Part shown: piece after piece, positions 38,720 through 57,251 of the stretch
Layout of the letters: every line of letters starts with the position of its first letter
Numbering within the stretch: the first letter of the stretch is position 1
Origin: Caecitellus pseudoparvulus
Lineage: Eukaryota > Protista > Bigyra: Bicosoecida
Assembly (NCBI GenBank): GCA_965644315.1
Contig: CBFFRQ010000068.1
Span: forward strand, 1,116,001 to 1,180,000
DNA length: 64,000 nt
Reading direction: 5' to 3'
Made by a program: the position numbers and the translations under genes
Notes under the pieces: generated by a model
What the model was told of the DNA's origin: nothing
The model's database searches: none
Seen by the model: the letters and a program-made list of their open reading frames with translations, nothing else

Positions 38720-38906
38720 GAGTGGGGTTGCAGCGGAATTTGAACCTGGGGCAGTCGCGGCTGGGATACAGGGGGGAGCAGCCTGGGCAGTCCCCACTCC
38801 CTAGGGAGAACGAACACATGCTTGGACGGGAGTTTGAGTCTGGGCAATGCATTGCAGCCCAGTGCTGGTGAAGCCAGTGGGCAAGGCGCGAAGGGGGCCT
38901 AGCAGT

Positions 38907-40809
38907 TTACAGCGCCTTGGCAGCGGCCACGAGCTTGGCAACGTTGGGGGTGCCAAGGCCGGTGGTGGCGTCCCAGCCAGCGGCGGCGGAGAAGCCAGTG
39001 GAGCAGCACAGAGTCTCTGTGCACTTGTTGTCGCCCTCAGTGACGTCGTTGAACGCATCGGGGTTGTTGGCGGCGATGGCGTACAGGGTGGGGTTGGCGA
39101 AGCCGAGCTTGGACTTGCCTGCCTTCACTCGGGCAGAGTTGACGATGGACATGATGCCGGCGACGACAGGGCAGGAGGCAGAGGTGCCATCCACAGCCTG
39201 GACCTGGCCGTCCAGCTGGATGTAGTAGTTGTGGCCCAGGGCGGCAATGTCGGGGTAGCCACGGCCGGCCTTGTTGAAGTCCTTCTCAGGGGGGGTCACG
39301 CCAGACTTGGACAGATAAGCAGACACGACGGCCTCCTGGTAGGAGGGGCGAGGGGCGTAGACAGAGAAGCCACCGCCGGAGGTGATGAGGGCACCCTTGG
39401 CGTTGGAGCAGACGATCTCAGTGCCGCCAGTGGCGCACTGCAGCTGGTTCTGGCAGATGGGCTCGCTGGCGCCAGAGGTGGAGCCAGAGCCAGGCTTGAT
39501 CTGGGTGGCGCCGACAGCGGTGATGTAGGGGGAGGAAGCGGGGAAGGCGGGGTTGGCCTTCTCGGTGGTGCAGAAACCGTCCGTGCGGCCGTGGGCACCG
39601 GAGTCACCAGAGGAGGCAAGCAGGGTGATGCCAGCGGCGCCCAGCTTCTGGAAGTTGGTGTTGACGGTCTCCACGAAGTTCTTGGAGCCGCCCTGAGAGC
39701 AAGGCTTGGACCCTGCGTCGATCTGGCACTGGTCAGTCTCGGACCAGCCGTAAGACATGGACACGACGTCGATGCCGTAGCCGGAGTTGGAGAGCATGTC
39801 CTCGGTCATGTCATACATCCAGTCGGAGGAGGTGTAGTAGTAGTTCGTGGCGCCCTCGCCGGTGGAGCCGATGTACTGCACGTCCAGGGTGGACTCAGCC
39901 TGGGGCTGGTTGTTGAAGGGTCCGATCTTCTTGTCCACAGTCCAGCTCTTGACGCCGGTGTTGGAGACGAAGGTCTTCAGGTCCATGTCAGAGTACGCAG
40001 TGAGGCCCTGGAACTCGAAGGCAGACTGGACGATGCTGGAATCAGCCGTGTGGTCGCCAATGTTGTAGAACGACTTGATGGTCTCAGGCACGACAGACAG
40101 GTCCCCAGCGCCGTTCTTGACGGCATGGGTGCGCCCATGGCGGCTAGTCTTGGGCAGCTGGTTCAGGCCGGCGATGAACTTGACATCGCCACGCAGAGCC
40201 TTGGGGAAGGTGTAGTCCCCCAGGACGCGGTGCACCTCGGCGCCGCTCTCGGAGTGCTTGTAGTGGCCGACCTTGGCGCCGCCCAGCATGCTGGAGACAG
40301 CAGCGGCAGTGCCAGAGCACTTCAGGGAGGCGCGTGTCGCGGCCACTTCGCAGTCCATGCCTGCGCGTGAAGCGGAAGTCGCCGCATTGCACTCCGTGCA
40401 GGCGCCGCCGACGCACAGTTGGCGCAGTGCTTACCAGCATCAGCCAGAGTGCGCTGCACCTTGGCCACGTGGGCAGAAGTAGGAGCAGTCAGCTTGTTCA
40501 GCTGCTCCATGGGCACAAACTTGCCGTATGCGGCGCTGTAGTACGGGTGCAGGCGGATGTGCAGTGCACCAACAGTTCCTCACCCTAGGGCTCGTCAAGT
40601 GCAAGCATCGCGTAGCAGAGCGCAGCTCACCTGCCGGGGGTGGACACGTCCCAGAACAGCTTGTCCAGGACATCCAAGTTGCGCTGGGGAAGGGCCACAG
40701 TGAAGTCCAGCTTGGTGCCGGGTGCACTGGCGCCAACCTTGGTCCAGCTTGGCGTGGTGGCTGCCACGGTCGTGGCAGCCACCGCAAGCAGAGCTGCGAT
40801 GGTCTTCAT
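38907..40809 (-). CDS. Secreted sedolisin / tripeptidyl-peptidase I (S53); introns 40630-40536 and 40434-40361
   Basis: Signal peptide MKTIAALLAVAATTVAA; prodomain ALPQRNLDVL..VSTP..YGK; catalytic motifs AESTLDVQY, SSGDSG, GGGFS, GRGYPDIAA, GTSASCP; Ca-site GWDATTGLG. Strong C-ending codon bias. Confidence 0.93.
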
Positions 40810-41296
40810 GGTGAAGGTGGGGCTCCTTAAATTCAGGGCAACACTGTTTGTTGCCAGGGGTGTGTTGGAAGTGATCGTAGTTTGAAGATCGTTGGCGTCT
40901 GTGCGAGGGACCGTGCAAGACTGGTCAAAGGTGGCAAGGGAAGTCAGTTGGCAGTCGGCGTGAAGCCGTGGGGATCGCATTGCTAGCTGGACTGGGGAGG
41001 ATGCTAGTGGAGCCCTGTGGAACACTGTTCAGAGCACGTAGTTGGGGCGAAGTGCTTGCTGTGCAGCTGCTCGGCCGAGTGTAGCTGGTAAGTGGACAAA
41101 TCGCACGGTTTCGGCGAGCTCCGTGTCTCCTGGAACCTTGTAGCCGCCCAAATCAAACTTGGCACATTGATCCACACCTATGAACGTATGGTTCCTTGTA
41201 GCAGCGCATGAGACCGTTTTTATTTGCGTTTCAGGCTTTCCAACCGCGCTGCCCTCTGCGTGCGCAATTTCCGCAAGCTGCAGAGACTTCGGCACC

Positions 41297-44200
41297 ATGT
41301 TTGCCCTCGCAGAAGAGGTACAGGAGTCCTTTGCACCAGAAGCACTTGCATTAGGATGCCAATACAAGGTGCTGCACTTAGAGGGCGCAGAGCAGCCGGA
41401 GGCACGGCAGGACGACACGTGGAGCTGGTGGGACGCAGCTGGTGCTGCGGCTGCCTTCATTTCAGCTCCTTGCGCCCCTGCCCGGTTCATCCCAACAAAG
41501 GCAGTCCAAAGTGCTTTGGACGCACGAGACATAGAATGGAGGGCCTTCTGCCTGCCGTCAACCAGGAACACGTTGCTTGTCGGCGAGCGCATGCTTGCAC
41601 TCTTGGACACGTCCACCACCTGGCGTTGCCAAGCTCTCCTGCAGCTGCCGTTAGATGCTGGGGACTGTCTGCCTTCAGGAGCCGGGCACTTCGGCGAAGC
41701 TGCCGCTTTGGCAGTCCCGGACGTGCACGGGGTTGTGCATTTGTGGTACGGCAGGCAGGGCCGCCTTCTACACAGGGCTGTGGGAAACCTGCCCTGGACC
41801 GAGACTCTTGGGCACGGTGCAAACTGCATTGCCCATGCTGCGACAGACGCACAGATTTCCGACGAGCAGGAGCTGTTTGGGCAATTGGTGGTCGTGACCC
41901 TCGACGGGACGGTCTGGCACGGCAGCTTCCGTGCTGAGCTGGAAACGGGAATGGCTGCACCAGCACCTGGCGCACCCGATCAGCCGACCCAGTCCCAGTC
42001 CCGCAGCCCCAGCTCCCTTTGTGTTCGCTGGAGGGCCCCGCTGAATGCCCGCCAAACTGGCCTGCGCAGCATAACTTGCGCGAAGGTGGCGCGCGCTCCA
42101 CGGGAAGGGAGGGGCACACACGTTTTCCTCGCTGGCAGAGTGGGGCAAGGGGCATCTCACCATCACTGCCTCTGCATTCACCTTCCGGTTGATGATGCTG
42201 CACCACCGTCGCTGCTGGCTTGCGCCCCGGTTGTCCCACCTGGCGCGCCTGGGCAGACTTGTGACATTGCCACACAGCTGTTCCTGGAACCTTTACAAGA
42301 GACAAGCAGGGTCGGCACGCTGCAGTCTCTATCAGTTCCCTCTAAAGGGTATTCCGGTCCCCCATCCTGTGCTGCAGCAGGCTCATGCTCTTGCTCTGCA
42401 GTTGGCAGCCACTGTGCCCAGCACGGCCGCACTTGCAGAAGGGAAGCTGGTGCTACCGAGCCAAACAGTTCCGATTCCATAGTGTTCCTGTTGCCTCCAA
42501 GCAGTGCTGAGGCAGATGTGGTGGCCATCAATGCTGCTGGCCACTTGTTCATGCTGCAGCCAGGCGGACTTCGTTTTCACCTGCCGCCACCAGCAGAAGA
42601 TGCGTGGGTGGAGGCGGCATGGCTGTCGAGGCACTGCTTGATGGCATTCACCCGGACTGGAGACTTTGTCGCTTTCCATGGTGACGCAGAGGGTGGTTGG
42701 TCCACAGCGGCCTCCTTTGATCCCCTTCCTGTCGGCCAGCACCATGGCGCCATGTGCGTTGCAGGACAAGCTGCCGCGATGTGTGCAGTCAAGGCTCCAC
42801 TCACAGCTTGTGTGGTGCCGAGCGCCACATCAAGCCCCAAGCTCCTGCTCTTGTGCAAGCATGTGGCTGCTTGTCGAACACGCTTCGCTTGGTCTGCAGT
42901 GGATTCTTCATCTGCGACGGCTGTCGAGCAGCGCCCGGGAAGCATGTCTCACGATGAAGGAAGTGCGCAGCTCGACGCGATTTCTGAGGCAGTTGATCAT
43001 GCCCTGCAGGGGGCATCAAGTGAAGACTTAAAAGAAGGCGGGCACATTTTCAAGTCTCGACTGTTCAACATGGTGTCCCTTTCACCCGTGCCGCTTCGGG
43101 CTTTTGCTGTTTCGGTTGTGGAGTCCATCGTTCAGGAGCTGAGTGGTGGTGCCACCGTGGGGGAGGCGGAGCTTTCTCAGCGCATCCGGGCATTGCTTCA
43201 GCTTGCAGCCACACACAGTGAGCCAGTCGCCACCCTGCTTTTGGAGGCAGTGCTGGGCGTACTGAAACCGCAGCCAAGCCCCGCCGGCCTAGATGTAGCA
43301 CGGGGCAGCGTGGAGGCAGCCTGCCGCCTCGTGGACATCTTGCTGCAACACGTTGCAGCATTGGGAGGACAAAAGGCAGCGCACATATTGGCCTCAATGC
43401 TCGCTGGCTGCACGGCTAGCACCGTCTCAGAGACATGCTGCCTGTGGGAAACGGGGCTGAAGTGCCTAAGACAAGCGGGAGAATCTGGAACTCCGATTCA
43501 GGGACAGCTGCAGTCTCAGCTCGACGCTCTTGAGTTGTTGGACCGCCTTGACATGAGTGGCGACGTCTGCCCTGCCCTCATCTCCCAGCTTGTTGATGAG
43601 GGGCCGCGTGCTCTCCTCCGTGTTGCTCTCGTTGGAGGGCAGGAAACACATGTGCGCGAGATTTTGACCCGCACCCCAGCGGTCGCACCAGAAGAAATGT
43701 TCGAGCTGCTTGAAATTGCTGCGGCGTCCATGTCAGCCCACGGGCTTCTGCCGCTCCTCCCTGCCCCCCCTGCCGTTCAGCTTCGGGACCCGGTTGTTGC
43801 TGTCCACAGAGGCCCGCCAGTGGGGCTGCCTCCCCCGCTGACTGTGGGGGCAGGAGGCCCCTCGACGAGCCCAGTGCAAGCTCCTCCGCCCCACTTTTCA
43901 TTGCTTGTGCAGCCGCACCGTTTTGTATTCGAGGGACAGGCTGCGACATGGACAGTACAGCCACATTCCTCCTCAAGCCCTCAGCCACTGCCAGTGGTAC
44001 TAAGCGCGCTATGCCACGCTTGGATCCACCTTTTAGACTGCTTGGATCGGCATGGGCGCCATGATGTGGCTCTGTCTACTTTACAGCAGCTGTTTCGCCA
44101 CATGCCTGCAGAGGTGCCCATGCTGCCTGCAATAGATCATCTCCGCGAGCGCATGAGCAAGCTGCACGAAGAAAACTTCATTGAATCTCGAGACTTGGCT

Positions 44201-47200
44201 GTGTCCAGGGACGAATGGGCCACCTTGAAGGCATCAGAGAAGCTCGAGGTTGCTCTCGCAGGGGCTCACCCGGCTGTCGCGCTGGTTGAGGCGGGCAAGG
44301 CGGTGGAGCAGCTAACAGGATCGGCCCTCCGTGATCTCGACGCAGAGACACTGGAGAATTGGAGACGCGCCTTTCGCGGCATGCTGGAGGAAAGCGAACC
44401 AAACTATTCCGTTCAAGTTTTGGCTCACGCCGTGTTGGACCACGCGGCCCACACGGACCACGCCCTCATGTCAAGCAACACTGCACAGCAGCTGCTCTTT
44501 GACCTGTGTTCAAGCCTTGAGACAGCGGATGAACAGGTACTATCCTTGGTACAAGAAGCCCTTCTCTCTCTGGATAATGCGCTGGCTCTGCGTGTGGGCG
44601 CAACTCTTGCCGCCCTCCAGAGTGCGGCTCATGCAGCACGAGACACTTCCCTCAGCCTTGCGCAAGCATGGCACCTCTGCTCTGCAACTGACCACCAGCT
44701 AGCTGCTTGGGATGACGCACTGCTCGCATGCTGCTTTGGCGTTCCTGATGAGTCCATGAGCACTCTTGCAGCCATGGCACCTGAAGACTTGAACCCCCCG
44801 TCCTTCACAGCCTTTGCGTCGAAAGTTGACCGTTGGCTCCCAGCGGGCGCCCCCCATACCATGCTCCTTCACATGCTTTCCATAGCAAAGGCCAGCGAGC
44901 ACCCAGCGGTTGCACCACTTGTGTGTGCTGCAGCTGCGTCCCGCTTGTCTGTGTGTGTGATGGGATCCCCAGACTCAGCAGCAGCTGTCATGGGAGTGCA
45001 GGAGGTTCACGAAGCCCTTGCCATAGCCCTCCGTGACACAGGGCTGGCTATGGATTGGCTTCCATGGGCTGAAGGCATGATGAAGTTGGCATGCTTTCGC
45101 CTGGCTCGGCGCCTTCTGGACGATGCGCCCTCAGTCAGCCACACATCTGTCCGTGTAGCACACCGCATTCTGCAGCACGCTGCTGAAACTATGGGGCACG
45201 CAGAGTGGCAAAGCCGTCCACTTCCCCCTGGTGCATTGACTGCCTTCTTTGAGGTGCAGCAAGAAGTTGAAGATGGCGTCCGCGATGATGTGGCTTTCCT
45301 TGGTTCCATTGAACGTGTTGCTGCCTTTGCGGAGACTGCTGTCGATGCAGGCTATGCCGGCTCGGCTGCTCAGCGCCACGTGACGCTGTCACAGCTTCGC
45401 AGTCTCATTGACAGCAACACAGGGATTTCTGTGGGAGTCTCGGCTGTGCATGCCCTGCTGTCTGCCTTCCCCCTTTGCTTTCGCCTTGTGCAGGACCCTA
45501 CCTCAGGCTTGCTGTCGGATGAAGCAGCATGCGACCTAGGCAACGAGCTGCTGCAAGCCCGCGAGCGCTTACTCCAACGATCCAGTGTTGCATCAGGGAT
45601 GTCTTGGATAAAGAGAAAGCTTGGGGCCACCGTCGCCGCTGCCTTTTCACTCGACGTTCCGTCAGCTCTCCTGGAGGACTCTCGAGCGTCGGGGGAGCTG
45701 CCAGCTGACCTTCGGGCCGCTGCAACAGCAGAGCAGCTTTTGGGTGTCGCTTGGAGCTTGAACGTTCAACGGAACACAGCAGATGAAATGCTCACTTGGT
45801 GCATGGTGGTGGACGCAGCCATGGACACATCTCAGTGGCTCCATGCTGCTGCAGCAGCGTTCACGTGCCTCATACGTGCCCAGAAGTGCCGCGATGTTGA
45901 GGCGGTCCAAGCATGTGCAGGGCTCATCATCGAGCTCGTTGTTCGCCACTCAGGACTCTCGACGCCAACCTTGACCACTGGTACCCAGCTCCTGCAGTCT
46001 GCGTGCCCTGCATTGGCACGTCTCAAACTCAGCGATGAATCGATAGCACCGGATCGGCGTTGCCCGGCAAGTATCTTGCTTCACATAGCTAAGTGCGGAC
46101 AAGGGGTGCTTGATTGCGGACAAACTGGGACAACTGCTGCATTCCTGGACGCTTTCAATGCCTTTGTCGATGTGTTGTCGGTGCAGACTCTTGCTCGCTG
46201 CTGCAACCTTTCGCTGGATTGTTTGCTCCTCCCTATTGAAGAGGCAGTGCCTACCCTTGCGCCACTAGCGTCAGGGTCCCCCTTGGCCTTGCTCGTGGCT
46301 TATGCGGCGAAGTTAGAGCTCTCCGATGCCTCAGCGATGAGGATCGTGTCCTTGCTAGCAGAGGGGTCAGCCCCATCTCCAGCTCCCGGAGGGACCATTC
46401 GACATGGGGTGGCGATGTGCCTCTTCGCAGTTCTAGATCGTCAGCTCAGTGCGTCAGCTGCAGCCTTTGCTGCCTGTCCCGAGCCTTCCCTGCAGGCTAC
46501 ATTGTTCTTGGGGGCTGCCTGCTTCGGCGCTGAAGCAACCGCTGCCCTTGCCCAGTGGCTTCCACATGAGCAGTTTCAAGAGCAATTGGTTGGTATGGTC
46601 GGCCCTACGATTCATCAAGCGCTCACAGCTGCGGCTCGGAGCAGCATTTTTGGCTCCTCTGCTGACTCTGATGGGGATGGGGAGATCTTCGAGCGGTTTG
46701 CTGCTCTCACCGGAACCTCCGCAGCGAAGAAGCAAAGTGTCAATCTGAGCTTTCGAGATGTTCTGAAGGATGCGGCAGCTGCCCTGCTCATGCTACCCCC
46801 TGTTGTATTGGACGATCAGAACCCACCATCGGACCACGTGCTGGTCATTTCCAGTGTTCATGTTGCCCAAGCATTCGCAGTGAAGCAAGGCGCTGTGTCT
46901 GAAAGAGAGATGTGCAAGCAAGTGCTTTCTGACTGCCTCGACCTCGGACGAGCAGAGGCTCAGTGCAGCTTCCAATTCGCGCAGGCGTTCAGCAGTGATA
47001 CCTCGAGTTCCGAACTGTCTGAGCCTGTGGCGATTTTCTGGTGGCTTGTGCATTGCTTCGACAGCTCTGCAGCTGCGCTTGTCCTTCACATCATGGGACA
47101 CGCACACCGCTTGCCTGCGCGTGCCCTGAAACCTGCTGCGGCAGTCTCTTCAGTCATCCACGACCCCTCAGTTGTTGAGGCTATGTCAGGCGCCGATGAA

Positions 47201-50200
47201 GTGGAGCCTGGGTGCCGTCATGCCATTGCCTTCGCACATGCCTTGAGTTGCGCGCTGTCACTTGATGCTTGCCTCGTGGCAGAGCACACTGCCGAGTGGC
47301 TCCACAGCATCGAGGCTTCAGCCACCCTTTGCCAATGTGGCGCAAGGGAGCACGCTTGGACCCAAGCTGTCGTTGAAGCTGCCACCGCTTTGCCCAGGCC
47401 GCTTTCTGGCGGAGAGTTGCTTGCGGCATTGGGGCTCACCTCCAGCCTGAACCTTGTGCGTGGCGTTGGTCACGCGTGTGACGCTGACCCACTTCTAAGC
47501 GAGCAAGTAGCACTCATCTCTAGCAGCCTGCCGTTTGTCGAAGTGGAGCAAGAGCCGTTTCAACGTGCAGCACTGGTTTGGTCGAAGGCTGTGCGTGCTG
47601 CAACATTTAAGGTTTGGCTGTCCAGTGTACCTCTCGTCAACTCCGTGCTCGAGTTCTCATTAGGCCAACTCCCATCGGACTCTGAGGCACTTCGATTGTC
47701 TCCAAGGTTCCTTGTCGAAGCTTTGCTCACTCGTCACCTGTGGACGGCGGCCCAGCCAGGAGACGAGGCTCTTCAAGATCTGCTGACAGTGCTAGAGCAA
47801 AGAGGGAAGGTGGCGCCAGCAACTGCAGAGAGAGTCCTACTGCCACTGCTTCCTGGGGGAGACCAACTGTGGAGGAGCATCCTCCAAAGCACCTCAGAAA
47901 GGCTGGTGCCATGTGCAGAACATTCCCACATCCAGCTGGCCTCCCAGCACGAGGTGGTAGCGCTGCACCTTGCGAGTGTCCAAGCTGCATGGTGGCCAAA
48001 ACTCGCTGCCACAGCAGGCTTCTCTTCCGGAATGACGGAGTTTGGCAGGAGCTGGCTAGCCACTGTTAGTGAATGTGTCCGGGCTGCTGACGGAGACGTT
48101 CTCCTTGCAAATGTTTCGGAGGGTGTGTCTCATGCATTTGCTCGACATACCCCGAACTCTCCTGATGTTGCCATGTCAATTGCGCGGGGTGTCCTCCGAG
48201 AGATGGTATTTGACAGCGTTCTGCAGGCTGATCTATCTCACACCAAGCACCTGGCAACCATGGTTGCCCCATGCCTTGAAATGAGGTCCCCAGAATCACT
48301 TGTGAGAGAAGTCGTCGCTGACTCTTGCACGTCAATGGTGCAAGCTGTTCTTGACAGCCTCGGCGACACAGTTCAGTCAGAGAGCAGCTTGGAGAGCGCT
48401 GAAGATGAAGCCAACCAGCTGCTTGTCCTCCTAGATGCTACCCAATCAATGCTTGGTACAGACTTGGCGGATGTTCCTCGGACTGTTGTAGCTGCCGCAG
48501 AGGCCCTGGCTTCTGGTCTTGCGAGCTTTCCATCAGATTCGGAAGCTGTCACACGTGCCCGTGATGTGCTGTACGGCAAGCTGAGCAGCATGTCCTCTGC
48601 ATCTTTCTCCAGCCATTTTGAAGCAGGCGTAAGGAATTGGGTGAAGGCGCTCAAGGCAGCTGGAGTGCTGGATGCTGAAGACTTGGAGCGTGTCGCGCTG
48701 CCGGGTACGTTCTCCGCACCGACTGTGGCCGCATTCGTGGCTTCTTTGCTAGAGAGAGCAACTTGTACGCTCGGCGCGAAAGAGGTGCTGCTCCAAATGC
48801 TATGGTTGCTGGCTTCAGATGGTTTAGATCACCTGCCAGCACTGCACGACACTGACAGCTGGGTCGCTTGCGCGTGGGCCGACATTTGGGACGGCTCAAG
48901 CCGATTTGGGCACGAATCTCTGCTTACAAGCACAGCTGCACAAGAAGCAATCGCCGACTTGACAAGAAGCAAGCTTTCTCCAGGACATGTCGATGCAGCG
49001 CTTGTGCTTGCAATTGGGTTGTCTGGTGCGATGCAGGGAGCTGCCACGATCGAGTCCATCCGCTGCCTTCACACTGTGTTGTTGAAGCTGCTGGGCTCCC
49101 CATGCGCCCAGGCGGTGCATCTTGCGAAGGCACTATCCAGGTGCTTCGGGGCCGAGGTCCAGGTGGACGCGCCTCAAGAGCTGGTGCTCGCAGTGTCTTG
49201 CATGGTCGGTACGCAGTCTCAGAAGAGCCACGAGGCCCCAGCTGCACTGCTGCGTTCTGTATCAGATGCTATATCGCACAGCATACTTGGGTATGGTGCA
49301 TTGAACGATGCAAGTGGGTACACTTTGGATTTTCGGCCGACCCTGGCTGCCTCGTTTCAGCCCTCACCAGCTCTAGCCCGTGCGTACGCCCGAGCTTGCA
49401 TTCACTGTCAAGAGAACCGAGTGCTTGCAACAAGGGCAGGCGCCAAGTGTGCACAGGCACTTGTCCTGTCTCATGATAGCAACGCATTTGCAGACTTCGT
49501 CCACGGTGCGGTGGAGCACTGCTCCGATGCAGAGCTGCTTGCTTGGGCATGCACAGCGACTCAGAGCTTGAACTCGAGACAGGCACTCGTGCAGCTCTCT
49601 AGATTTTGCTCCGAACTCGAATCTTCGAGCCTGGCTGGTGCTCGTATCCAAACACTTTTGTCAGCTTCGATTGCTCCAGAGCTCAGGTCAACAGCGGCAT
49701 TTCATGCAGTGTTGGATTGGAGCACCCATATAGTCTGCGAAAGAGTGAACCAACCATCCAGCTTGCGCACAGGTGGAGATTTGGTTCGAAAACACCTGCG
49801 GCCACACACTGCATCACTGGAAGAGCCGTGGGAGACCTGTTACGAAGACGGTGATGTGAGCGATGTGGAGTCGGGTGGCGATGTGGGTGCTGGGGGCGGT
49901 GACGGGTGGGAGGGCTGGGGAGAGGAGGGTGGAGTGACGGCTGTGTCGGGTGGCGATGGAGGCGGTGTGGAGTCGGGTGGCGATGTGGGTGCTGGGGGCG
50001 GTGACGGGTGGGAGGGCTGGGGAGAGGAGGGTGGAGTGACGGCTGTGTCGGGTGGCGATGTGGGCGATGTGGAGTCGGATGGCGATGGAGGCGATGTGGA
50101 GTCGGTTGGCGATGTGGGTGCTGGGGGCGGTGACGGGTGGGAGGGCTGGGGAGAGGAGGGTGGAGTGACGGCTGTGTCGGGTGGCGATGGAGGCGGTGTG

Positions 50201-53200
50201 GAGTCGGGTGGCGATGGAGGCGGTGTGGAGTCGGGTGGCGATGTGGGTGCTGGGGGCGGTGGCGATGGAGGCGGTGTGGAGTCGGGTGGCGATGTGGGCG
50301 ATGTGGAGTCGGGTGGCGATGTGGGCGATGTGGAGTCGGGTGGCGATGTGGGCGATGTGGAGTCGGGTGGCGCTGGAGGCGATGTGGAGTCGGGTGGCGA
50401 TGTGGGTGCTGGGGGCGGTGACGGGTGGGAGGGCTGGGGAGAGGAGGGTGGAGTGACGGCTGTGTCGGGTGGCGATGGAGGCGGTGTGGAGTCGGATGGC
50501 GATGGAGGCGGTGTGGAGTCGGGTGGCGATGTGGGTGGTGTGGAGTCGGGTGGCGATGTGGGCGGTGTGGAGTCGGGTGGCGATGTGGGCGATGTGGAGT
50601 CGGGTGGCGCTGGAGGCGATGTGGAGTCGGGTGGCGATGTGGGTGCTGGGGGCGGTGACGGGTGGGAGGGCTGGGGAGAGGAGGGTGGAGTGACGGCTGT
50701 GTCGGGTGGCGATGGAGGCGGTGTGGAGTCGGGTGGCGATGTGGGCGGTGTGGAGTCGGGTGGCGATGTGGGCGATGTGGAGTCGGGTGGCGATGTGGGC
50801 GATGTGGAGTCGGGTGGCGATGTGGGCGGTGTGGAGTCGGGTGGCGATGTGGGTGGTGTGGAGTCGGGTGGCGATGTGGGCGGTGTGGAGTCGGGTGGCG
50901 ATGTGGGCGATGTGGAGTCGGGTGGCGATGGAGGCGGTGTGGAGTCGGGTGGCGATGTGGGTGGTGTGGAGTCGGGTGGCGATGTGGGCGGTGTGGAGTC
51001 GGGTGGCGATGTGGGCGGTGTGGAGTCGGGTGGCGATGTGGGCGGTGTGGAGTCGGGTGGCGATGTGGGCGATGTGGAGTCGGGTGGCGATGGAGGCGGT
51101 GTGGAGTCGGGTGGCGATGTGGGTGCTGGGGGCGGTGACGGGTGGGAGGGCTGGGGAGAGGAGGGTGGAGTGACGGCTGTGTCGGGTGGCGATGTGGGTG
51201 GTGTGGAGTCGGGTGGCGATGTGGGCGGTGTGGAGTCGGGTGGCGATGTGGGCGGTGTGGAGTCGGGTGGCGATGTGGGCGGTGTGGAGTCGGGTGGCGA
51301 TGTGGGCGATGTGGAGTCGGGTGGCGATGGAGGCGGTGTGGAGTCGGGTGGCGATGTGGGTGCTGGGGGCGGTGACGGGTGGGAGGGCTGGGGAGAGGAG
51401 GGTGGAGTGACGGCTGTGTCGGGTGGCGATGTGGGTGGTGTGGAGTCGGGTGGCGATGTGGGCGGTGTGGAGTCGGGTGGCGATGTGGGCGGTGTGGAGT
51501 CGGGTGGCGATGTGGGCGGTGTGGAGTCGGGTGGCGATGTGGGTGGTGTGGAGTCGGGTGGCGATGGAGGCGGTGTGGAGCCGGGTGGCGATGTGGGTGC
51601 TGGGGGCGGTGACGGGTGGGAGGGCTGGGGAGAGGAGGGTGGAGTGACGGCTGTGTCGGGTGGCGATGGAGGCGGTGTGGAGTCGGGTGGCGATGTGGGC
51701 GGTGTGGAGTCGGGTGGCGATGTGGGCGATGTGGAGTCGGGTGGCGATGTGGGTGCTGGGGGCGGTGACGGGTGGGAGGGCTGGGGAGAGGAGGGTGGAG
51801 TGACGGCTGTGTCGGGTGGCGATGTGGGCGGTGTGGAGTCGGGTGGCGATGGAGGTGGTGTGGAGTCGGGTGGCGATGTGGGCGGTGTGGAGCCGGGTGG
51901 CGATGTGGGCGGTGTGGAGTCGGGTGGCGATGTGGGCGGTGTGGAGTCGGGTGGCGATGTGGGCGGTGTGGAGTCGGGTGGCGATGGAGGCGGTGTGGAG
52001 CCGGGTGGCGATGTGGGTGCTGGGGGCGGTGACGGGTGGGAGGGCTGGGGAGAGGAGGGTGGAGTGACGGCTGTGTCGGGTGGCGATGTGGGTGCTGGGG
52101 GCGGTGATGGGTGGGAGGGCTGGGGAGAGGAGGGTGGAGTGACGGCTGTGTCGGGTGGCGATGTGGGCGGTGTGGAGTCGGGTGGCGATGTGGGCGGTGT
52201 GGAGTCGGGTGGCGATGTGGGCGATGTGAAGCCGGGTGGCGATGTGGGCGATGTGGAGTCGGGTGGCGATGGAGGCGGTGTGGAGTCGGGTGGCGATGTG
52301 GGTGGTGTGGAGTCGGGTGGCGATGTGGGCGGTGTGGAGTCGGGTGGCGATGTGGGCGGTGTGGAGTCGGGTGGCGATGTGGGCGATGTGGAGTCGGGTG
52401 GCGATGTGGGCGGTGTGGAGTCGGGTGGCGATGTGGGCGGTGTGGAGTCGGGTGGCGATGTGGGCGGTGTGGAGTCGGGTGGCGATGTGGGCGGTGTGGA
52501 GTCGGGTGGCGATGTGGGCGGTGTGGAGTCGGGTGGCGATGTGGGTGGTGTGGAGTCGGGTGGCGATGTGGGCGGTGTGGAGTCGGGTGGCGATGTGGGC
52601 GGTGTGGAGTCGGGTGGCGATGTGGGCGGTGTGGAGTCGGGTGGCGATGGAGGCGGTGTGGAGCCGGGTGGCGATGTGGGTGCTGGGGGCGGTGACGGGT
52701 GGGAGGGCTGGGGAGAGGAGGGTGGAGTGACGGCTGTGTCGGGTGGCGATGTGGGTGCTGGGGGCGGTGATGGGTGGGAGGGCTGGGGAGAGGAGGGTGG
52801 AGTGACGGCTGTGTCGGGTGGCGATGTGGGCGGTGTGGAGTCGGGTGGCGATGTGGGCGGTGTGGAGTCGGGTGGCGATGTGGGCGATGTGAAGCCGGGT
52901 GGCGATGTGGGCGATGTGGAGTCGGGTGGCGATGGAGGCGGTGTGGAGTCGGGTGGCGATGTGGGTGGTGTGGAGTCGGGTGGCGATGTGGGCGGTGTGG
53001 AGTCGGGTGGCGATGTGGGCGGTGTGGAGTCGGGTGGCGATGTGGGCGATGTGGAGTCGGGTGGCGATGTGGGCGGTGTGGAGTCGGGTGGCGATGTGGG
53101 CGGTGTGGAGTCGGGTGGCGATGTGGGCGATGTGGAGTCGGGTGGCGATGTGGGCGGTGTGGAGTCGGGTGGCGATGGAGGCGGTGTGGAGCCGGGTGGC

Positions 53201-55165
53201 GATGTGGGTGCTGGGGGCGGTGATGGGTGGGAGGGCTGGGGAGAGGAGGGTGGCGATGTGGGCGGTGTGGAGTCGGGTGGCGATGGAGGCGGTGTGGAGC
53301 CGGGTGGCGATGTGGGCGGTGTGGAGTCGGGTGGCGATGTGGGCGGTGTGGAGTCGGGTGGCGATGGAGGCGGTGTGAAGCCGGGTGGCGATGTGGGTGC
53401 TGGGGGCGGTGACGGGTGGGAGGACTGGGGAGAGGAGGGTGGAGTGACGGCTGTGTCGGGTGGCGATGTGGGTGGTGTGGAGTCGGGTGGCGATGTGGGC
53501 GGTGTGGAGTCGGGTGGCGATGTGGGCGGTGTGGAGTCGGGTGGCGATGTGGGCGGTGTGGAGTCGGGTGGCGATGTGGGCGGTGTGGAGTCGGGTGGCG
53601 ATGTGGGCGGTGTGGAGTCGGGTGGCGATGTGGGCGATGTGGAGTCGGGTGGCGATGTGGGCGATGTGGAGTCGGGTGGCGATGTGGGCGGTGTGGAGTC
53701 GGGTGGCGATGTGGGTGGTGTGGAGTCGGGTGGCGATGTGGGCGGTGTGGAGTCGGGTGGCGATGTGGGCGGTGTGGAGTCGGGTGGCGATGTGGGCGTT
53801 GTGGAGTCGGGTGGCGATGTGGGCGGTGTGGAGTCGGGTGGCGATGTGGGCGGTGTGGAGTCGGGTGGCGATGTGGGCGGTGTGGAGTCGGGTGGCGATG
53901 TGGGCGGTGTGGAGTCGGGTGGCGATGGAGGCGGTGTGGAGCCGGGTGGCGATGTGGGTGCTGGGGGCGGTGATGGGTGGGAGGGCTGGGGAGAGGAGGG
54001 TGGCGATGTGGGCGGTGTGGAGTCGGGTGGCGATGTGGGTGGTGTGGAGTCGGGTGGCGATGTGGGCGGTGTGGAGTCGGGTGGCGATGTGGGCGGTGTG
54101 GAGTCGGGTGGCGATGGAGGCGGTGTGAAGCCGGGTGGCGATGTGGGTGCTGGGGGCGGTGACGGGTGGGAGGGCTGGGGAGAGGAGGGTGGAGTGACGG
54201 CTGTGTCGGGTGGCGATGTGGGTGCTGGGGGCGGTGATGGGTGGGAGGGCTGGGGAGAGGAGGGTGGCGATGTGGGCGGTGTGGAGTCGGGTGGCGATGG
54301 AGGTGGTGTGGAGTCGGGTGGCGATGGAGGCGGTGTGGAGCCGGGTGGCGATGTGGGTGCTGGGGGCGGTGATGGGTGGGAGGGCTGGGGAGAGGAGGGT
54401 GGCGATGTGGGCGGTGTGGAGTCGGGTGGCGATGGAGGCGGTGTGGAGCCGGGTGGCGATGTGGGCGGTGTGGAGTCGGGTGGCGATGTGGGTGGTGTGG
54501 AGTCGGGTGGCGATGTGGGCGGTGTGGAGTCGGGTGGCGATGTGGGCGGTGTGGAGTCGGGTGGCGATGTGGGCGGTGTGGAGTCGGGTGGCGATGGAGG
54601 CGGTGTGAAGCCGGGTGGCGATGTGGGTGCTGGGGGCGGTGACGGGTGGGAGGACTGGGGAGAGGAGGGTGGAGTGACGGCTGTGTCGGGTGGCGATGGA
54701 GGCGGTGTGGAGCCGGGTGGCGATGTGGGCGATGTGGAGTCGGGTGGCGATGGAGGCGGTGTGGAGTCGGGTGGCGATGGAGGCGGTGTGGAGCCGGGTG
54801 GCGATGTGGGTGCTGGGGGCGGTGACGGGTGGGAGGGCTGGGGAGAGGAGGGTGGAGTGACGGCTGTGTCGGGTGGCGATGTGGGCGGTGTGGAGTCGGG
54901 TGGCGATGTGGGTGCTGGGGGCGGTGACGGGTGGGAGGACTGGGGAGAGGAGGGTGGAGTGACGGCTGTGTCGGGTGGCGATGTGGGCGGTGTGGAGTCG
55001 GGTGGCGATGTGGGTGGTGTGGAGTCGGGTGGCAATGGGGGCAATGCGGAGGCTGGTGGTGCTCTTATCCCAGCAGGTATCGAGCAAGCTGTTGTACCTG
55101 GTGCACATGATGCCGCAGAGGCAGTGGCAAGCTTGACCAGCAGCATGTCGAGTTGGTTCACCTGA
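41297..55165 (+). CDS. NBAS/Sec39-like giant protein (beta-rich N-terminus plus helical solenoid) with a ~1700-aa repetitive acidic Gly-rich tail
   Basis: One open frame of 4661 aa; caccATG at 41297. Three segments resemble recalled NBAS sequence in the same order: ASMSAHGLLPLLP (~ETTSPHEYSVLLP), LARRLLDDAPSVSHTSVRVAHRILQ (~ASREYFNSSTNLTDSCMDLARCCLQ), QLLGVAWSL..VVDAAMDTSQWLHAA (~KLLGLAELL..LVEQALRFHDYKAA). Divergent and not confirmed by HMM. Confidence 0.6.
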   Translation: MFALAEEVQESFAPEALALGCQYKVLHLEGAEQPEARQDDTWSWWDAAGAAAAFISAPCAPARFIPTKAVQSALDARDIEWRAFCLPSTRNTLLVGERMLALLDTSTTWRCQALLQLPLDAGDCLPSGAGHFGEAAALAVPDVHGVVHLWYGRQGRLLHRAVGNLPWTETLGHGANCIAHAATDAQISDEQELFGQLVVVTLDGTVWHGSFRAELETGMAAPAPGAPDQPTQSQSRSPSSLCVRWRAPLNARQTGLRSITCAKVARAPREGRGTHVFLAGRVGQGASHHHCLCIHLPVDDAAPPSLLACAPVVPPGAPGQTCDIATQLFLEPLQETSRVGTLQSLSVPSKGYSGPPSCAAAGSCSCSAVGSHCAQHGRTCRREAGATEPNSSDSIVFLLPPSSAEADVVAINAAGHLFMLQPGGLRFHLPPPAEDAWVEAAWLSRHCLMAFTRTGDFVAFHGDAEGGWSTAASFDPLPVGQHHGAMCVAGQAAAMCAVKAPLTACVVPSATSSPKLLLLCKHVAACRTRFAWSAVDSSSATAVEQRPGSMSHDEGSAQLDAISEAVDHALQGASSEDLKEGGHIFKSRLFNMVSLSPVPLRAFAVSVVESIVQELSGGATVGEAELSQRIRALLQLAATHSEPVATLLLEAVLGVLKPQPSPAGLDVARGSVEAACRLVDILLQHVAALGGQKAAHILASMLAGCTASTVSETCCLWETGLKCLRQAGESGTPIQGQLQSQLDALELLDRLDMSGDVCPALISQLVDEGPRALLRVALVGGQETHVREILTRTPAVAPEEMFELLEIAAASMSAHGLLPLLPAPPAVQLRDPVVAVHRGPPVGLPPPLTVGAGGPSTSPVQAPPPHFSLLVQPHRFVFEGQAATWTVQPHSSSSPQPLPVVLSALCHAWIHLLDCLDRHGRHDVALSTLQQLFRHMPAEVPMLPAIDHLRERMSKLHEENFIESRDLAVSRDEWATLKASEKLEVALAGAHPAVALVEAGKAVEQLTGSALRDLDAETLENWRRAFRGMLEESEPNYSVQVLAHAVLDHAAHTDHALMSSNTAQQLLFDLCSSLETADEQVLSLVQEALLSLDNALALRVGATLAALQSAAHAARDTSLSLAQAWHLCSATDHQLAAWDDALLACCFGVPDESMSTLAAMAPEDLNPPSFTAFASKVDRWLPAGAPHTMLLHMLSIAKASEHPAVAPLVCAAAASRLSVCVMGSPDSAAAVMGVQEVHEALAIALRDTGLAMDWLPWAEGMMKLACFRLARRLLDDAPSVSHTSVRVAHRILQHAAETMGHAEWQSRPLPPGALTAFFEVQQEVEDGVRDDVAFLGSIERVAAFAETAVDAGYAGSAAQRHVTLSQLRSLIDSNTGISVGVSAVHALLSAFPLCFRLVQDPTSGLLSDEAACDLGNELLQARERLLQRSSVASGMSWIKRKLGATVAAAFSLDVPSALLEDSRASGELPADLRAAATAEQLLGVAWSLNVQRNTADEMLTWCMVVDAAMDTSQWLHAAAAAFTCLIRAQKCRDVEAVQACAGLIIELVVRHSGLSTPTLTTGTQLLQSACPALARLKLSDESIAPDRRCPASILLHIAKCGQGVLDCGQTGTTAAFLDAFNAFVDVLSVQTLARCCNLSLDCLLLPIEEAVPTLAPLASGSPLALLVAYAAKLELSDASAMRIVSLLAEGSAPSPAPGGTIRHGVAMCLFAVLDRQLSASAAAFAACPEPSLQATLFLGAACFGAEATAALAQWLPHEQFQEQLVGMVGPTIHQALTAAARSSIFGSSADSDGDGEIFERFAALTGTSAAKKQSVNLSFRDVLKDAAAALLMLPPVVLDDQNPPSDHVLVISSVHVAQAFAVKQGAVSEREMCKQVLSDCLDLGRAEAQCSFQFAQAFSSDTSSSELSEPVAIFWWLVHCFDSSAAALVLHIMGHAHRLPARALKPAAAVSSVIHDPSVVEAMSGADEVEPGCRHAIAFAHALSCALSLDACLVAEHTAEWLHSIEASATLCQCGAREHAWTQAVVEAATALPRPLSGGELLAALGLTSSLNLVRGVGHACDADPLLSEQVALISSSLPFVEVEQEPFQRAALVWSKAVRAATFKVWLSSVPLVNSVLEFSLGQLPSDSEALRLSPRFLVEALLTRHLWTAAQPGDEALQDLLTVLEQRGKVAPATAERVLLPLLPGGDQLWRSILQSTSERLVPCAEHSHIQLASQHEVVALHLASVQAAWWPKLAATAGFSSGMTEFGRSWLATVSECVRAADGDVLLANVSEGVSHAFARHTPNSPDVAMSIARGVLREMVFDSVLQADLSHTKHLATMVAPCLEMRSPESLVREVVADSCTSMVQAVLDSLGDTVQSESSLESAEDEANQLLVLLDATQSMLGTDLADVPRTVVAAAEALASGLASFPSDSEAVTRARDVLYGKLSSMSSASFSSHFEAGVRNWVKALKAAGVLDAEDLERVALPGTFSAPTVAAFVASLLERATCTLGAKEVLLQMLWLLASDGLDHLPALHDTDSWVACAWADIWDGSSRFGHESLLTSTAAQEAIADLTRSKLSPGHVDAALVLAIGLSGAMQGAATIESIRCLHTVLLKLLGSPCAQAVHLAKALSRCFGAEVQVDAPQELVLAVSCMVGTQSQKSHEAPAALLRSVSDAISHSILGYGALNDASGYTLDFRPTLAASFQPSPALARAYARACIHCQENRVLATRAGAKCAQALVLSHDSNAFADFVHGAVEHCSDAELLAWACTATQSLNSRQALVQLSRFCSELESSSLAGARIQTLLSASIAPELRSTAAFHAVLDWSTHIVCERVNQPSSLRTGGDLVRKHLRPHTASLEEPWETCYEDGDVSDVESGGDVGAGGGDGWEGWGEEGGVTAVSGGDGGGVESGGDVGAGGGDGWEGWGEEGGVTAVSGGDVGDVESDGDGGDVESVGDVGAGGGDGWEGWGEEGGVTAVSGGDGGGVESGGDGGGVESGGDVGAGGGGDGGGVESGGDVGDVESGGDVGDVESGGDVGDVESGGAGGDVESGGDVGAGGGDGWEGWGEEGGVTAVSGGDGGGVESDGDGGGVESGGDVGGVESGGDVGGVESGGDVGDVESGGAGGDVESGGDVGAGGGDGWEGWGEEGGVTAVSGGDGGGVESGGDVGGVESGGDVGDVESGGDVGDVESGGDVGGVESGGDVGGVESGGDVGGVESGGDVGDVESGGDGGGVESGGDVGGVESGGDVGGVESGGDVGGVESGGDVGGVESGGDVGDVESGGDGGGVESGGDVGAGGGDGWEGWGEEGGVTAVSGGDVGGVESGGDVGGVESGGDVGGVESGGDVGGVESGGDVGDVESGGDGGGVESGGDVGAGGGDGWEGWGEEGGVTAVSGGDVGGVESGGDVGGVESGGDVGGVESGGDVGGVESGGDVGGVESGGDGGGVEPGGDVGAGGGDGWEGWGEEGGVTAVSGGDGGGVESGGDVGGVESGGDVGDVESGGDVGAGGGDGWEGWGEEGGVTAVSGGDVGGVESGGDGGGVESGGDVGGVEPGGDVGGVESGGDVGGVESGGDVGGVESGGDGGGVEPGGDVGAGGGDGWEGWGEEGGVTAVSGGDVGAGGGDGWEGWGEEGGVTAVSGGDVGGVESGGDVGGVESGGDVGDVKPGGDVGDVESGGDGGGVESGGDVGGVESGGDVGGVESGGDVGGVESGGDVGDVESGGDVGGVESGGDVGGVESGGDVGGVESGGDVGGVESGGDVGGVESGGDVGGVESGGDVGGVESGGDVGGVESGGDVGGVESGGDGGGVEPGGDVGAGGGDGWEGWGEEGGVTAVSGGDVGAGGGDGWEGWGEEGGVTAVSGGDVGGVESGGDVGGVESGGDVGDVKPGGDVGDVESGGDGGGVESGGDVGGVESGGDVGGVESGGDVGGVESGGDVGDVESGGDVGGVESGGDVGGVESGGDVGDVESGGDVGGVESGGDGGGVEPGGDVGAGGGDGWEGWGEEGGDVGGVESGGDGGGVEPGGDVGGVESGGDVGGVESGGDGGGVKPGGDVGAGGGDGWEDWGEEGGVTAVSGGDVGGVESGGDVGGVESGGDVGGVESGGDVGGVESGGDVGGVESGGDVGGVESGGDVGDVESGGDVGDVESGGDVGGVESGGDVGGVESGGDVGGVESGGDVGGVESGGDVGVVESGGDVGGVESGGDVGGVESGGDVGGVESGGDVGGVESGGDGGGVEPGGDVGAGGGDGWEGWGEEGGDVGGVESGGDVGGVESGGDVGGVESGGDVGGVESGGDGGGVKPGGDVGAGGGDGWEGWGEEGGVTAVSGGDVGAGGGDGWEGWGEEGGDVGGVESGGDGGGVESGGDGGGVEPGGDVGAGGGDGWEGWGEEGGDVGGVESGGDGGGVEPGGDVGGVESGGDVGGVESGGDVGGVESGGDVGGVESGGDVGGVESGGDGGGVKPGGDVGAGGGDGWEDWGEEGGVTAVSGGDGGGVEPGGDVGDVESGGDGGGVESGGDGGGVEPGGDVGAGGGDGWEGWGEEGGVTAVSGGDVGGVESGGDVGAGGGDGWEDWGEEGGVTAVSGGDVGGVESGGDVGGVESGGNGGNAEAGGALIPAGIEQAVVPGAHDAAEAVASLTSSMSSWFT
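49850..55033 (+). repeat. Coding composite tandem array: 27-bp unit (GGTGGCGATGTGGGCGGTGTGGAGTCG = GGDVGGVES) interspersed with 22 copies of a Trp module, usually 75 bp (GGDVGAGGGDGWEGWGEEGGVTAVS)
   Basis: Directly visible. Motif spacings such as 75, 237 (75+6x27) and 663 bp (2x75+19x27). The frame is never broken. Confidence 0.98.
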
Positions 55166-55181
55166 TCAACTGGCAATGCAT

Positions 55182-57251
55182 TCAGAACTCCAGGGGCCGG
55201 ACTGCCATGAACTGTTCTACGACTTCATCTGTGACGGTTGCCCGTGCCGCTTGATGAGCAGACACCATTTCTTGCATCACCTCAATGAGCCGTGCTTTCA
55301 CCTCGCCGGTCAGCATCTCACCAGACTCGTACTTCTTGCCGATCTCTGCAAGCTCCTCATCGCTTTCGAGGAAGAAACCCAGGTACTGGAATGGCACGTC
55401 AACTGCCAAGTTGGCGCCGGACTCGCGCTGCTCTTCAGCAGTCGCACCCCCCCCCGAAAATGCGTACTTGTTGATCTTCTTCTTGATGTCTTTCGGCGAG
55501 TCCGTCACGAAAATAGCACTGGTCTTCGACGAGGCTGACATCTTAGATTTGGACCCTTGGAGAGCGGGAAAGAAAGTTGAGTGAATGAGGGCAGGCTTGT
55601 TCCATCCTTTGCGGGCAGCGACGTCCCGAGTCATGCGGAAGTAGGGGTCTTGATCAATGGCTTGCGGGATGAGGCAGAGCAAGTCTTCCTTGCCCTGCAG
55701 GGGGACCTTGAAGCTGGTGGGGAAGGAAGGAGCGGCCTGGGTTGCAGGGAACGATTGCTTGCCAATGCAGTCAGAGCCAGTGAACCCGAAGATGCCCTTG
55801 ACTTGGTTGTGCGTTACCGCCTTCTGGATGGTGAGAATGTTGCGGTACATGTGGCCGTAGTACTCCAAGTCGGAAAAGATAAAGGTCTTTTTCGGATCAA
55901 AGCCACACGCGATGATGTCCTTCGCGTTCTCCTTGCCAAGTCGGTGGCACTCCTCCAGCTCCAGGTCTTTCCACAGGAACTTCTCGTCATCAGTGAGCTG
56001 AACGACAAGCGGCACGTCAAAGGCTTCTTGCAACCACTGTGTGAACTGAAACGGCACCATGTGTCCCATGTGCAGTGCCTCGGAGCTGGGGCCTCGTCCA
56101 GTGTACAGGTAGAACTTCTCGCCCTTCATGTAGCGTTGGAGCAGGATGCCCAGGTCACGATGCGAGAAAAAGATGCCACGGCGCAAAAACCGATGGGCCT
56201 TGCGCTTTGTGACAGCCTCCACTGTCGCAATGAGGTCGGGAGTGATTGCTGAGCAGCCAAAGTCTCGAATCAGCTTCTGGTAGTCAACGCCCTCGTCACC
56301 CTCTGCCTCCATCTCCCAAGGCGTAACCTTCTGACCTCCTGAATCCGCAGCTGCAGCAGCACTTGCCTCATCACTGCCGCCAGTCTCAGCTTTAGGTGCT
56401 GCGGGTGCCAGAGCAGCTTCAGCTGGGGGAGCGGCTGCGTCCGCAGGCACCTCATCAGCCGCACTGCCCGAACCTGCCGCTGCAGCAGCAGCAGCGTCTG
56501 CAGTGCTGGCAGCTGGTGTTTGGGGCTTATCTGGTGGTGTGGGGTTCAATGCTTGGATATCCTCTGTGGGCGGCAGCTCGGCGCTGTCGGCTTCAACAGG
56601 CGCAAGTGGGATGTCACTCTGCCCTTGGTTGGCAGCAGTGAAGGTGATATCAAGCCATCCGCGCTTTTGGGGCTTGTACTTGGTCTTCAGCACCTTAATC
56701 TCGCCGACCGCTCCAGTACTTGCAGTGACAGCTGCATCAGCCTTGACGGCATTGAAGTCAACTCCGGGAATGTACACCAGGCGCAAGTCAGTGACGCTGT
56801 CTGGCACCTTGGCTGAATCGTACACCGCGTGCCCGAAACGTGACTCTACGAGAGCCCGACTCGCCTCGATGAGCTGCACGGGGATATCTTGCCCCACAAT
56901 CTCATTTGCCTTCTCCTCGAAAGCCGTCAATTCATCTGCCGTGGGTGCAACCTGTGCAAGCGCGCAGGTGCGAAAAGGTGTGGCAGCGATTTCCGCACAC
57001 ACCACCGCAGACCTCCCCAGCACGCACGTCATCACGGAAAAGCTTGACAGTCATGGAAATCTTGCCCTTCTGCACTTTCTTCTTCATGGTTGTCTGCTGC
57101 AGGGGCGTCCCGAACGTCATCGCGATGGCGCCCTGCGCAGGAAAACGCGAGAAGTGTGGCGCTCCGCCTCAGGATGCAGCTGTTGTTTGCCAGTCCACAC
57201 CTTCACGATGTGCGTTGCTGTCTCAGCAACTGGCTCGCTGAGGCTCTGCAT
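55182..57251 (-). CDS. WARS1: Cytosolic-type tryptophanyl-tRNA synthetase with an N-terminal AlaX-like domain; introns 57200-57133 and 57027-56952
   Basis: [62 protein letters not shown]. Two GT..AG introns give a continuous frame from gccATG at 57251. Confidence 0.96.

Follow-up and report, generated by a model that had tools for sequence, protein, structure and literature searches.

A giant protein of Caecitellus pseudoparvulus carries 22 acidic di-tryptophan motifs on a minisatellite-encoded C-terminal arm

In a stretch of 64,000 nucleotides from the bicosoecid Caecitellus pseudoparvulus (assembly GCA_965644315.1, contig CBFFRQ010000068.1, forward-strand positions 1,116,001 to 1,180,000), hereafter the window, we analysed a gene for a giant protein whose C-terminal arm repeats an acidic di-tryptophan motif 22 times. 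This is a real and unusual multivalent motif arm, carried by a giant scaffold without a family match, and a distant orthologue holds two copies of the same motif in a short tail. We propose tentatively, and with somewhat less than even confidence, that the arm would act as a high-avidity capture line for coated vesicles, its tryptophan modules binding a tryptophan pocket on a coat protein, for which the mu-homology domain of delta-COP would be the best fit. Unless stated otherwise, nucleotide coordinates are those of the window.

The gene is a single uninterrupted open reading frame (ORF), intron-free, on the plus strand (41180-55165), and its product comprises 4,622 amino acids (aa) counted from the methionine at 41297. 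Translation bore out the layout described in an earlier note on this DNA: about 2,840 aa of ordinary sequence, then about 1,750 aa of repeats made of Gly, Val, Asp, Glu and Ser, and finally a unique tail that closes with ..SSWFT. The arm itself (49814-55030), delimited by translation, Tandem Repeats Finder, regular-expression matching and tokenising, is polyanionic, Gly-rich and disordered, and is encoded by a minisatellite of 27-nucleotide and 75-nucleotide units. A regular expression for DGWE[GD]WGEE returned exactly the 22 copies that had been reported, 19 of them with Gly and 3 with Asp at the variable position, between nucleotides 49901 and 54952 and at spacings of 25-196 aa. Gly makes up 43% of the tail, Val 17% and Asp plus Glu 23%, and the charge is extreme (410 Asp and Glu versus 9 Lys and Arg). 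The tail holds 46 tryptophans, compared with 48 in the 2,860-aa body; all those of the array stand in a GW or WG context, and only one of the 42 GW of the whole ORF, which also has 22 WG, lies outside the tail. When tokenised, the array yielded 22 W modules, each 20-25 aa in length, and some 130 spacers of nine residues with the consensus GGDVGGVES, with higher-order duplications. Neither the motif nor a second array was found elsewhere in the 30.6-Mb genome, which puts the array far beyond chance. The repeats are followed, up to the stop codon, by a unique and conserved stretch of about 44 residues (55031-55165), S/T-rich and amphipathic, which ends in ..SSMSSWFT.

When 1.84 billion representative proteins were scanned in full with HMMER, the query being aa 401-1600 of the ORF numbered from 41180 (window 42380-45979), two matches were obtained: P0001, a protein of 3,100 aa (E 9e-64, 29% identity), and a 57-aa fragment that was 91% identical and comes from a close relative. 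P0001 derives from a metagenome, where it is encoded on a 144-kb contig (L014), and it is colinear with the window protein along its full length at 27% identity overall. The window and the P0001 contig share one gene order, in which this gene follows a giant coiled-coil gene and a kinase and precedes TrpRS, a gene of about 600 aa and an importin-like HEAT gene. This synteny, together with the colinearity and with neighbours that are 64% (TrpRS) and 45% (importin-like) identical, as against 27% for the giant protein, identifies P0001 as the true orthologue of a fast-evolving gene. A scan of metagenomes for the locus yielded one more (L015), which belongs to the same species as P0001 and has an identical N-terminus; the known members of the family are two, the window protein and P0001.

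The tail of P0001 is non-repetitive and about 215 aa long, rich in Ala, Gly, Val, Asp and Ser, and acidic (35 Asp/Glu versus 3 Lys/Arg). It contains W[DE]GWG[DE] twice (WDGW on both occasions) and WSQF once: DDWSDDWDGWGDG stands at its start, and DGGWDGWGDS and GWSQF lie near its end. The WxxW/F spacing is found in every copy of the motif in both orthologues, and the end of P0001, ..SNLSSWFS, aligns with the ..SSMSSWFT of the window protein over about 35 residues. In 200,000 composition-preserving shuffles of the P0001 tail, the 7-mer GW[DE]GWG[DE] appeared once, and at least three W..[WF] motifs appeared in 76. Since the motif and the C-terminus were kept at an overall identity of 27%, we take the di-Trp core, its WxxW/F spacing, the acidic Gly-rich setting and the C-terminal peptide to be ancestral and constrained, and the conservation of the motif in the orthologue argues for a function. 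The earlier note had suggested looking for short acidic WxxW tails on the NBAS of related organisms; the tail of P0001 answers this description, on a protein for which the NBAS label found no support. Comparison of the two tails further indicates that the lineage of the window protein raised the module from two copies to 22 and brought the number of spacers to about 130, an event that is recent and lineage-specific.

These data also bear on the idea that the array is absent from the mature protein, either removed as an intron or included by an annotation that should end before it. We consider this very improbable: the 5.2 kb contain no stop, the same frame continues beyond the array into the conserved C-terminal peptide, and P0001 has acidic W-motif sequence at the same position inside one called gene.

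The comparison with P0001 likewise supports the start of translation. Homology begins exactly at the methionine at 41297, as proposed in the earlier note, with M1, F2 and A3 invariant in both orthologues, and P0001 has in-frame stops 12 and 17 codons 5' of its own methionine. Because homology starts there and P0001 is closed just upstream, 41297 is the correct start, and the in-frame extension of 39 codons that precedes it (41180-41296, plus strand) is probably untranslated. This extension is hydrophobic, and a secreted or surface protein was considered on its account; the reading was rejected as the extension is not conserved and meets stops in P0001. The gene product is a cytosolic giant without a signal peptide, fast-evolving and single-copy, no paralogue of the body having been found in its own genome.

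With its WxxW/WxxF spacing, acidic flanks, disorder and terminal ..SSWF, the tail fits the class of delta-COP ligands that is curated in ELM as LIG_deltaCOP1_diTrp_1 (PMC7145657). The features of this class are present in the 22 WE[GD]W modules with their D/E flanks in a 43%-Gly tail, and in P0001 in its two WDGW and its WSQF. One such ligand is the lasso of yeast Dsl1, a disordered acidic loop at the tip of a tether, which binds delta-COP and alpha-COP through its Trp motifs (PMC4868844); the window arm resembles it in being acidic, disordered and equipped with di-Trp motifs, and the WxxW core of the window protein falls in the same class (PMC4868844, PMC7145657). However, the lasso is short, internal to a CATCHR subunit and poor in Trp, whereas the window protein has 22 modules in a 1,750-aa C-terminal arm and no detectable CATCHR or Sec39 homology. 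Gcs1 and ArfGAP1 offer a second parallel, since their near-C-terminal WxxF/W 'delta-L' signal binds the delta-COP mu-homology domain with low-micromolar affinity and is accompanied by an S/T-rich amphipathic ALPS motif (PMC6737914). The WxxW modules and ..SSWF of the window protein and the WSQF of P0001 resemble this arrangement, but the window protein has no ArfGAP domain and its copy number is 22 instead of 1-2. The C-terminal peptide (55031-55165), with its spaced V, L, M, W and F and a hydrophobic moment of about 0.34-0.35, recalls ALPS-type curvature sensors such as that of ArfGAP1, a likeness at the level of composition only.

In the mechanism that we propose, each W module would bind weakly to a tryptophan pocket in a domain of a vesicle coat, and the best-fitting reader would be the mu-homology domain of delta-COP, which reads the 'delta-L' or di-Trp class of the Dsl1 lasso and of Gcs1/ArfGAP1. 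Anchored to the scaffold body, the arm would thereby become a long-reach, high-avidity line for the capture of coated vesicles, and COPI would be the best single candidate coat. The low affinity of each motif would make its repetition functionally meaningful. The array itself arose recently, by slippage or unequal exchange of a coding minisatellite that forms G-quadruplexes. According to the literature, Dsl1 homologues outside some fungi have no COPI-binding lasso, and how ZW10/NRZ catches COPI vesicles is unclear (PMC4868844, PMC4206994). A conserved acidic di-Trp tail on a giant protein of propeller/solenoid-like layout is a candidate for this COPI-capture function in at least one lineage, and its natural 22-fold amplification would ease testing by pull-down.

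Tails with many short linear motifs are a known design. FAM21, with about 21 LFa motifs for retromer, and Eps15, with DPF repeats for AP-2, have long disordered tails in which a weak ligand for a coat or an adaptor recurs many times, with a gain in avidity. Unlike the window array, a recent and near-perfect minisatellite, those arrays are old and degenerate and use other motif chemistry. What is unusual here is the near-perfect amplification on a polyanionic arm of 1,750 aa, along with the two-copy ancestral state in a relative.

On the side of the reader, the genome encodes mu-homology-domain proteins, the corresponding genes being five in number. The most divergent of them, with the weakest match, is an ORF of 542 aa whose mu-homology domain is C-terminal (G000:C81); these are the features that delta-COP should have, and the ORF is a candidate for it.

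Some observations weigh against a coat, or against COPI in particular, as the partner of the arm. Other coat components, namely the AP-2 alpha-ear and the W-box of the clathrin terminal domain, also read WxxW/F. The body has no detectable relative beyond P0001, and it therefore gives no link to a membrane or a tethering complex. The copy number of the motif may be neutral, given a minisatellite prone to G-quadruplexes, a point taken up below. Finally, GW/WG sequence rich in Gly, Asp and Glu also has the look of an Argonaute hook, and the genome contains a gene with PAZ and Piwi domains (G000:C41:127837-131217, L001). This Argonaute is divergent: in its 918-aa open frame, the PAZ and Piwi models are matched in part only.

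The last point leads to a reading that was absent from the earlier note, in which the arm would be a GW/WG platform recruiting many Argonautes, in the manner of GW182/TNRC6, of plant NRPE1 and SPT5L, or of Tas3. The motif fits such a hook about as well as it fits a coat ligand: all array Trp are in a GW/WG context within Gly/Asp/Glu-rich disorder, a potential partner is encoded in the genome, and GW/WG repeats are known multivalent ligands of Argonautes (PMC2965232, PMC9262622). The hooks of GW182/TNRC6, NRPE1 and SPT5L resemble the arm in having many GW/WG Trp in Gly-rich disorder, whereas the window arm has a fixed WxxW, very acidic flanks and near-identical modules, on an unrelated giant body (PMC2965232, PMC9262622). 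Pfam scans of the two orthologues detected in the body no domain for RNA binding or silencing. Between these distant orthologues, the acidic flanks were kept along with the precise WxxW spacing, and the conserved WSQF and the terminal SSWF fit WxxF coat ligands better than a hook. Argonaute hooks usually conserve the number and context of their Trp, not a fixed di-Trp spacing, and a gap of 2 residues is too short to span two PIWI pockets. In our judgement, which draws on the known spacing of these pockets, a two-residue gap that remained fixed at 27% identity would favour a single-site di-Trp reader, and we hold an Argonaute partner to be quite improbable. If Argonaute were nonetheless the partner, this would make the protein a GW platform that is both new and very large. 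Kinesin-light-chain W-acidic motifs, PEX5 WxxxF and LIR/AIM motifs were also considered and were rejected, as the residues of their consensus are not found in the module.

At the DNA level the array is a coding minisatellite that has recently expanded or is undergoing homogenisation. Tandem Repeats Finder reported a 27-nucleotide period with about 193 copies (49945-55042). The 130 spacers have 11 DNA forms, and only four forms occur among the 21 of the 22 W modules that were caught by the parsing expression. Within the array, 573 bp are exactly duplicated (51894-52466 and 52557-53129, an offset of 663 bp), which points to a very recent segmental duplication or else to an effect of assembly. 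Of the 26 canonical G-quadruplex motifs of the window, 22 lie in the array (49885-54960), one for each W module and always on the sense strand, none being present on the opposite strand of the array; thus every acidic di-Trp motif between 49901 and 54952 is also a G-quadruplex motif. The GC skew across the array is +0.69. It is plausible that these G-quadruplexes drove the instability of the array, and they would also be present in the mRNA. Two minus-strand ORFs of 1,764 and 1,778 aa (49814-55176) were rejected as genes, being by-products of a repeat without stops.

Because the minisatellite has expanded or been homogenised so recently, the likeness among its copies is uninformative about selection, whether on the motif or on its number. 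With so few DNA forms, no selection can be read from the copy number, which could be neutral or a product of mis-assembly, and this counts further against a capture line that depends on avidity. One may then suppose that one or two ancestral motifs and the C-terminal peptide are all that matters, and that the 22-fold array is a neutral or assembly-inflated G-quadruplex minisatellite, a view compatible with any partner. Besides the four module forms, the 11 spacer forms, the exact duplicate and the G-quadruplex in each module, P0001 speaks for this view, since for that protein about 215 aa of non-repetitive tail are enough. Against it, all insertions and deletions over 5.2 kb are in frame, as is the C-terminus beyond them, although this is a weak objection, since frame-preserving units suffice to give the same result without selection. 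We regard this explanation as a serious but doubtful one. Whatever the partner of the arm may be, the gene shows clearly, in a natural setting, the multiplication of a short linear motif through expansion of a minisatellite, and the two-copy ancestral state in a relative makes it useful for studying how avidity evolves in disordered tails.

The earlier note had read the protein as an NBAS/Sec39-like tether with an amplified COPI lasso. Of this interpretation the ligand half is supported, as an acidic, disordered WxxW array that matches the delta-COP class is in frame and its motif is kept in P0001; the assignment of the body to NBAS/Sec39 found no backing, without being refuted. Neither the window body (2,870 aa) nor P0001 matched Sec39 (PF08314) at E<=1, and the same was true of the Nbas_N propeller (PF15492) in the window protein and P0001 and of Rod_C of ROD/KNTC1 in Pfam scans of both orthologues. 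The sole match of either orthologue in the Pfam and NCBIfam scans was U3snoRNP10 in the window protein, which was non-significant (E 0.13). Searches of PDB chain sequences, yeast Sec39 included, with phmmer and the body and with a profile of the two orthologues gave no match at E<=10. Three word-indexed searches of 5.8 billion proteins, with body aa 1-2870, the P0001 tail and body aa 1-600 as queries, returned nothing new, a weak blank given that the last one missed even P0001.

Structure prediction was of little help in this respect. AlphaFold2 runs on aa 1-1200 and aa 1230-1700, each with a two-sequence alignment, reached pLDDT values of 34.6 and 46.3, and both models were unusable for comparison. 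In a Foldseek search of the PDB with the low-confidence model of aa 1230-1700 the best match had an E of 0.28; a Sec39 chain (8eki_C) ranked 23rd with an E of 0.7 and a TM of 0.20, which is noise and not evidence. In these low-confidence models, strands occupy aa 139-470 and helices aa 555-1200 and 1230-1700, a secondary structure that suggests a beta-rich N-terminus followed by helices.

This layout is what the NBAS reading has in its favour. The body would then be the NBAS/Sec39 subunit of the Dsl1/NRZ tether of the endoplasmic reticulum, and the lasso, which yeast has on Dsl1, would here be at the C-terminus of NBAS, in amplified form. A beta-rich N-terminus and helices to the end of about 2,840 aa invite comparison with NAG, which has a propeller at 1-420 and a Sec39-like domain at 734-1355 in a total of 2,371 aa, and both NBAS/NAG and its paralogue ROD/KNTC1 resemble the window protein in size and, as far as our low-confidence models suggest, in having an N-terminal beta region before a very long helical solenoid (PMC4206994). 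The Sec39 domains of human and yeast share only about 13%, so that a fast-evolving NBAS orthologue would be expected to escape sequence searches (PMC4206994). The body gene is single-copy, the acidic di-Trp motif is kept in P0001, and with Dsl1 homologues outside some fungi devoid of a lasso, the binding of COPI by NRZ is an open question (PMC4868844, PMC4206994). On the other hand, no sequence, profile or structural match to NBAS or ROD was obtained, and a propeller followed by a solenoid is common to ROD, nucleoporins, coat subunits and HOPS subunits and is not specific to one family (PMC4868844). A six-frame search of the genome with Sec39, Nbas_N, RINT1_TIP1, Zw10_middle and ZW10_C, which took in ZW10 and RINT1 as proteins that an NBAS/Sec39 subunit would bind along with the SNARE Use1, was blank; the search had no positive control, and absence is not implied. 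A match to Zw10_N proved spurious, the protein being coiled-coil and RS-rich. In the same genome the models of the Dsl1 complex gave nothing while mu-homology domains matched strongly: either the proteins are very divergent or the six-frame search is insensitive.

On balance, we consider it unlikely that the body is the NBAS/Sec39 subunit with a lasso at its C-terminus. It is distinctly unlikely, in our view, that the protein is a highly diverged NBAS equivalent whose arm, grown from two ancestral motifs to 22, is the so far missing element by which non-fungal Dsl1/NRZ tethers bind COPI. Were the NBAS reading true, it would bear directly on how non-fungal NRZ tethers bind COPI (PMC4868844, PMC4206994): coat capture could sit on the NBAS subunit, on an arm that would be hundreds of nanometres long at full extension and a natural high-avidity ligand of COPI. 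We found no description of an acidic Trp tail on NBAS in the literature consulted.

The body can be divided further by its conservation. The N-terminal beta-rich region (aa 1 to about 550; 41297-42950, plus strand) is the best conserved, with 30-36% identity when counted per 100 aa, and the strands of the low-confidence AlphaFold2 model fall within it. It is followed by a predicted helical-repeat body of about 2,290 aa (42951-49813, plus strand), colinear with P0001 and interrupted by a Pro-rich loop at aa 820-895. The most conserved helical block comprises aa 1254-1556 (45056-45964, plus strand; 31-37% identity), where the second BLASTP segment, the alignment and the best stretch of the search of representative proteins coincide. 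Within the N-terminal region, W-x-W-W-D at aa 42-46 (41420-41434) is invariant in both orthologues, as is LD-x-RDIEWR some 30 residues later. A Cys/His cluster, C358-x5-C-x-C-x5-H-x3-H-x3-C380 (42368-42436, plus strand), is inserted in the beta-rich region, and its six residues are all invariant in the two proteins, in poorly conserved surroundings; the arrangement of these residues may represent a zinc site.

Regarding the neighbouring genes, overlapping long ORFs lie on opposite strands upstream of the giant gene, at 38847-40370 (plus), which has no Pfam match, and at 38907-40358 (minus). The minus-strand ORF is probably the real gene, since the syntenic gene on the P0001 contig encodes a 524-aa protein kinase on the minus strand. 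Downstream, the TrpRS (55182-57035, minus strand; L014:19793-21595 on the P0001 contig) carries at its N-terminus a remnant of an AlaX-like editing domain (NCBIfam AlaXM, E 5e-7). This AlaX-like/TrpRS fusion is kept over its full length, at 64% identity, on the P0001 contig, where the TrpRS gene has the opposite strand relative to the giant gene.

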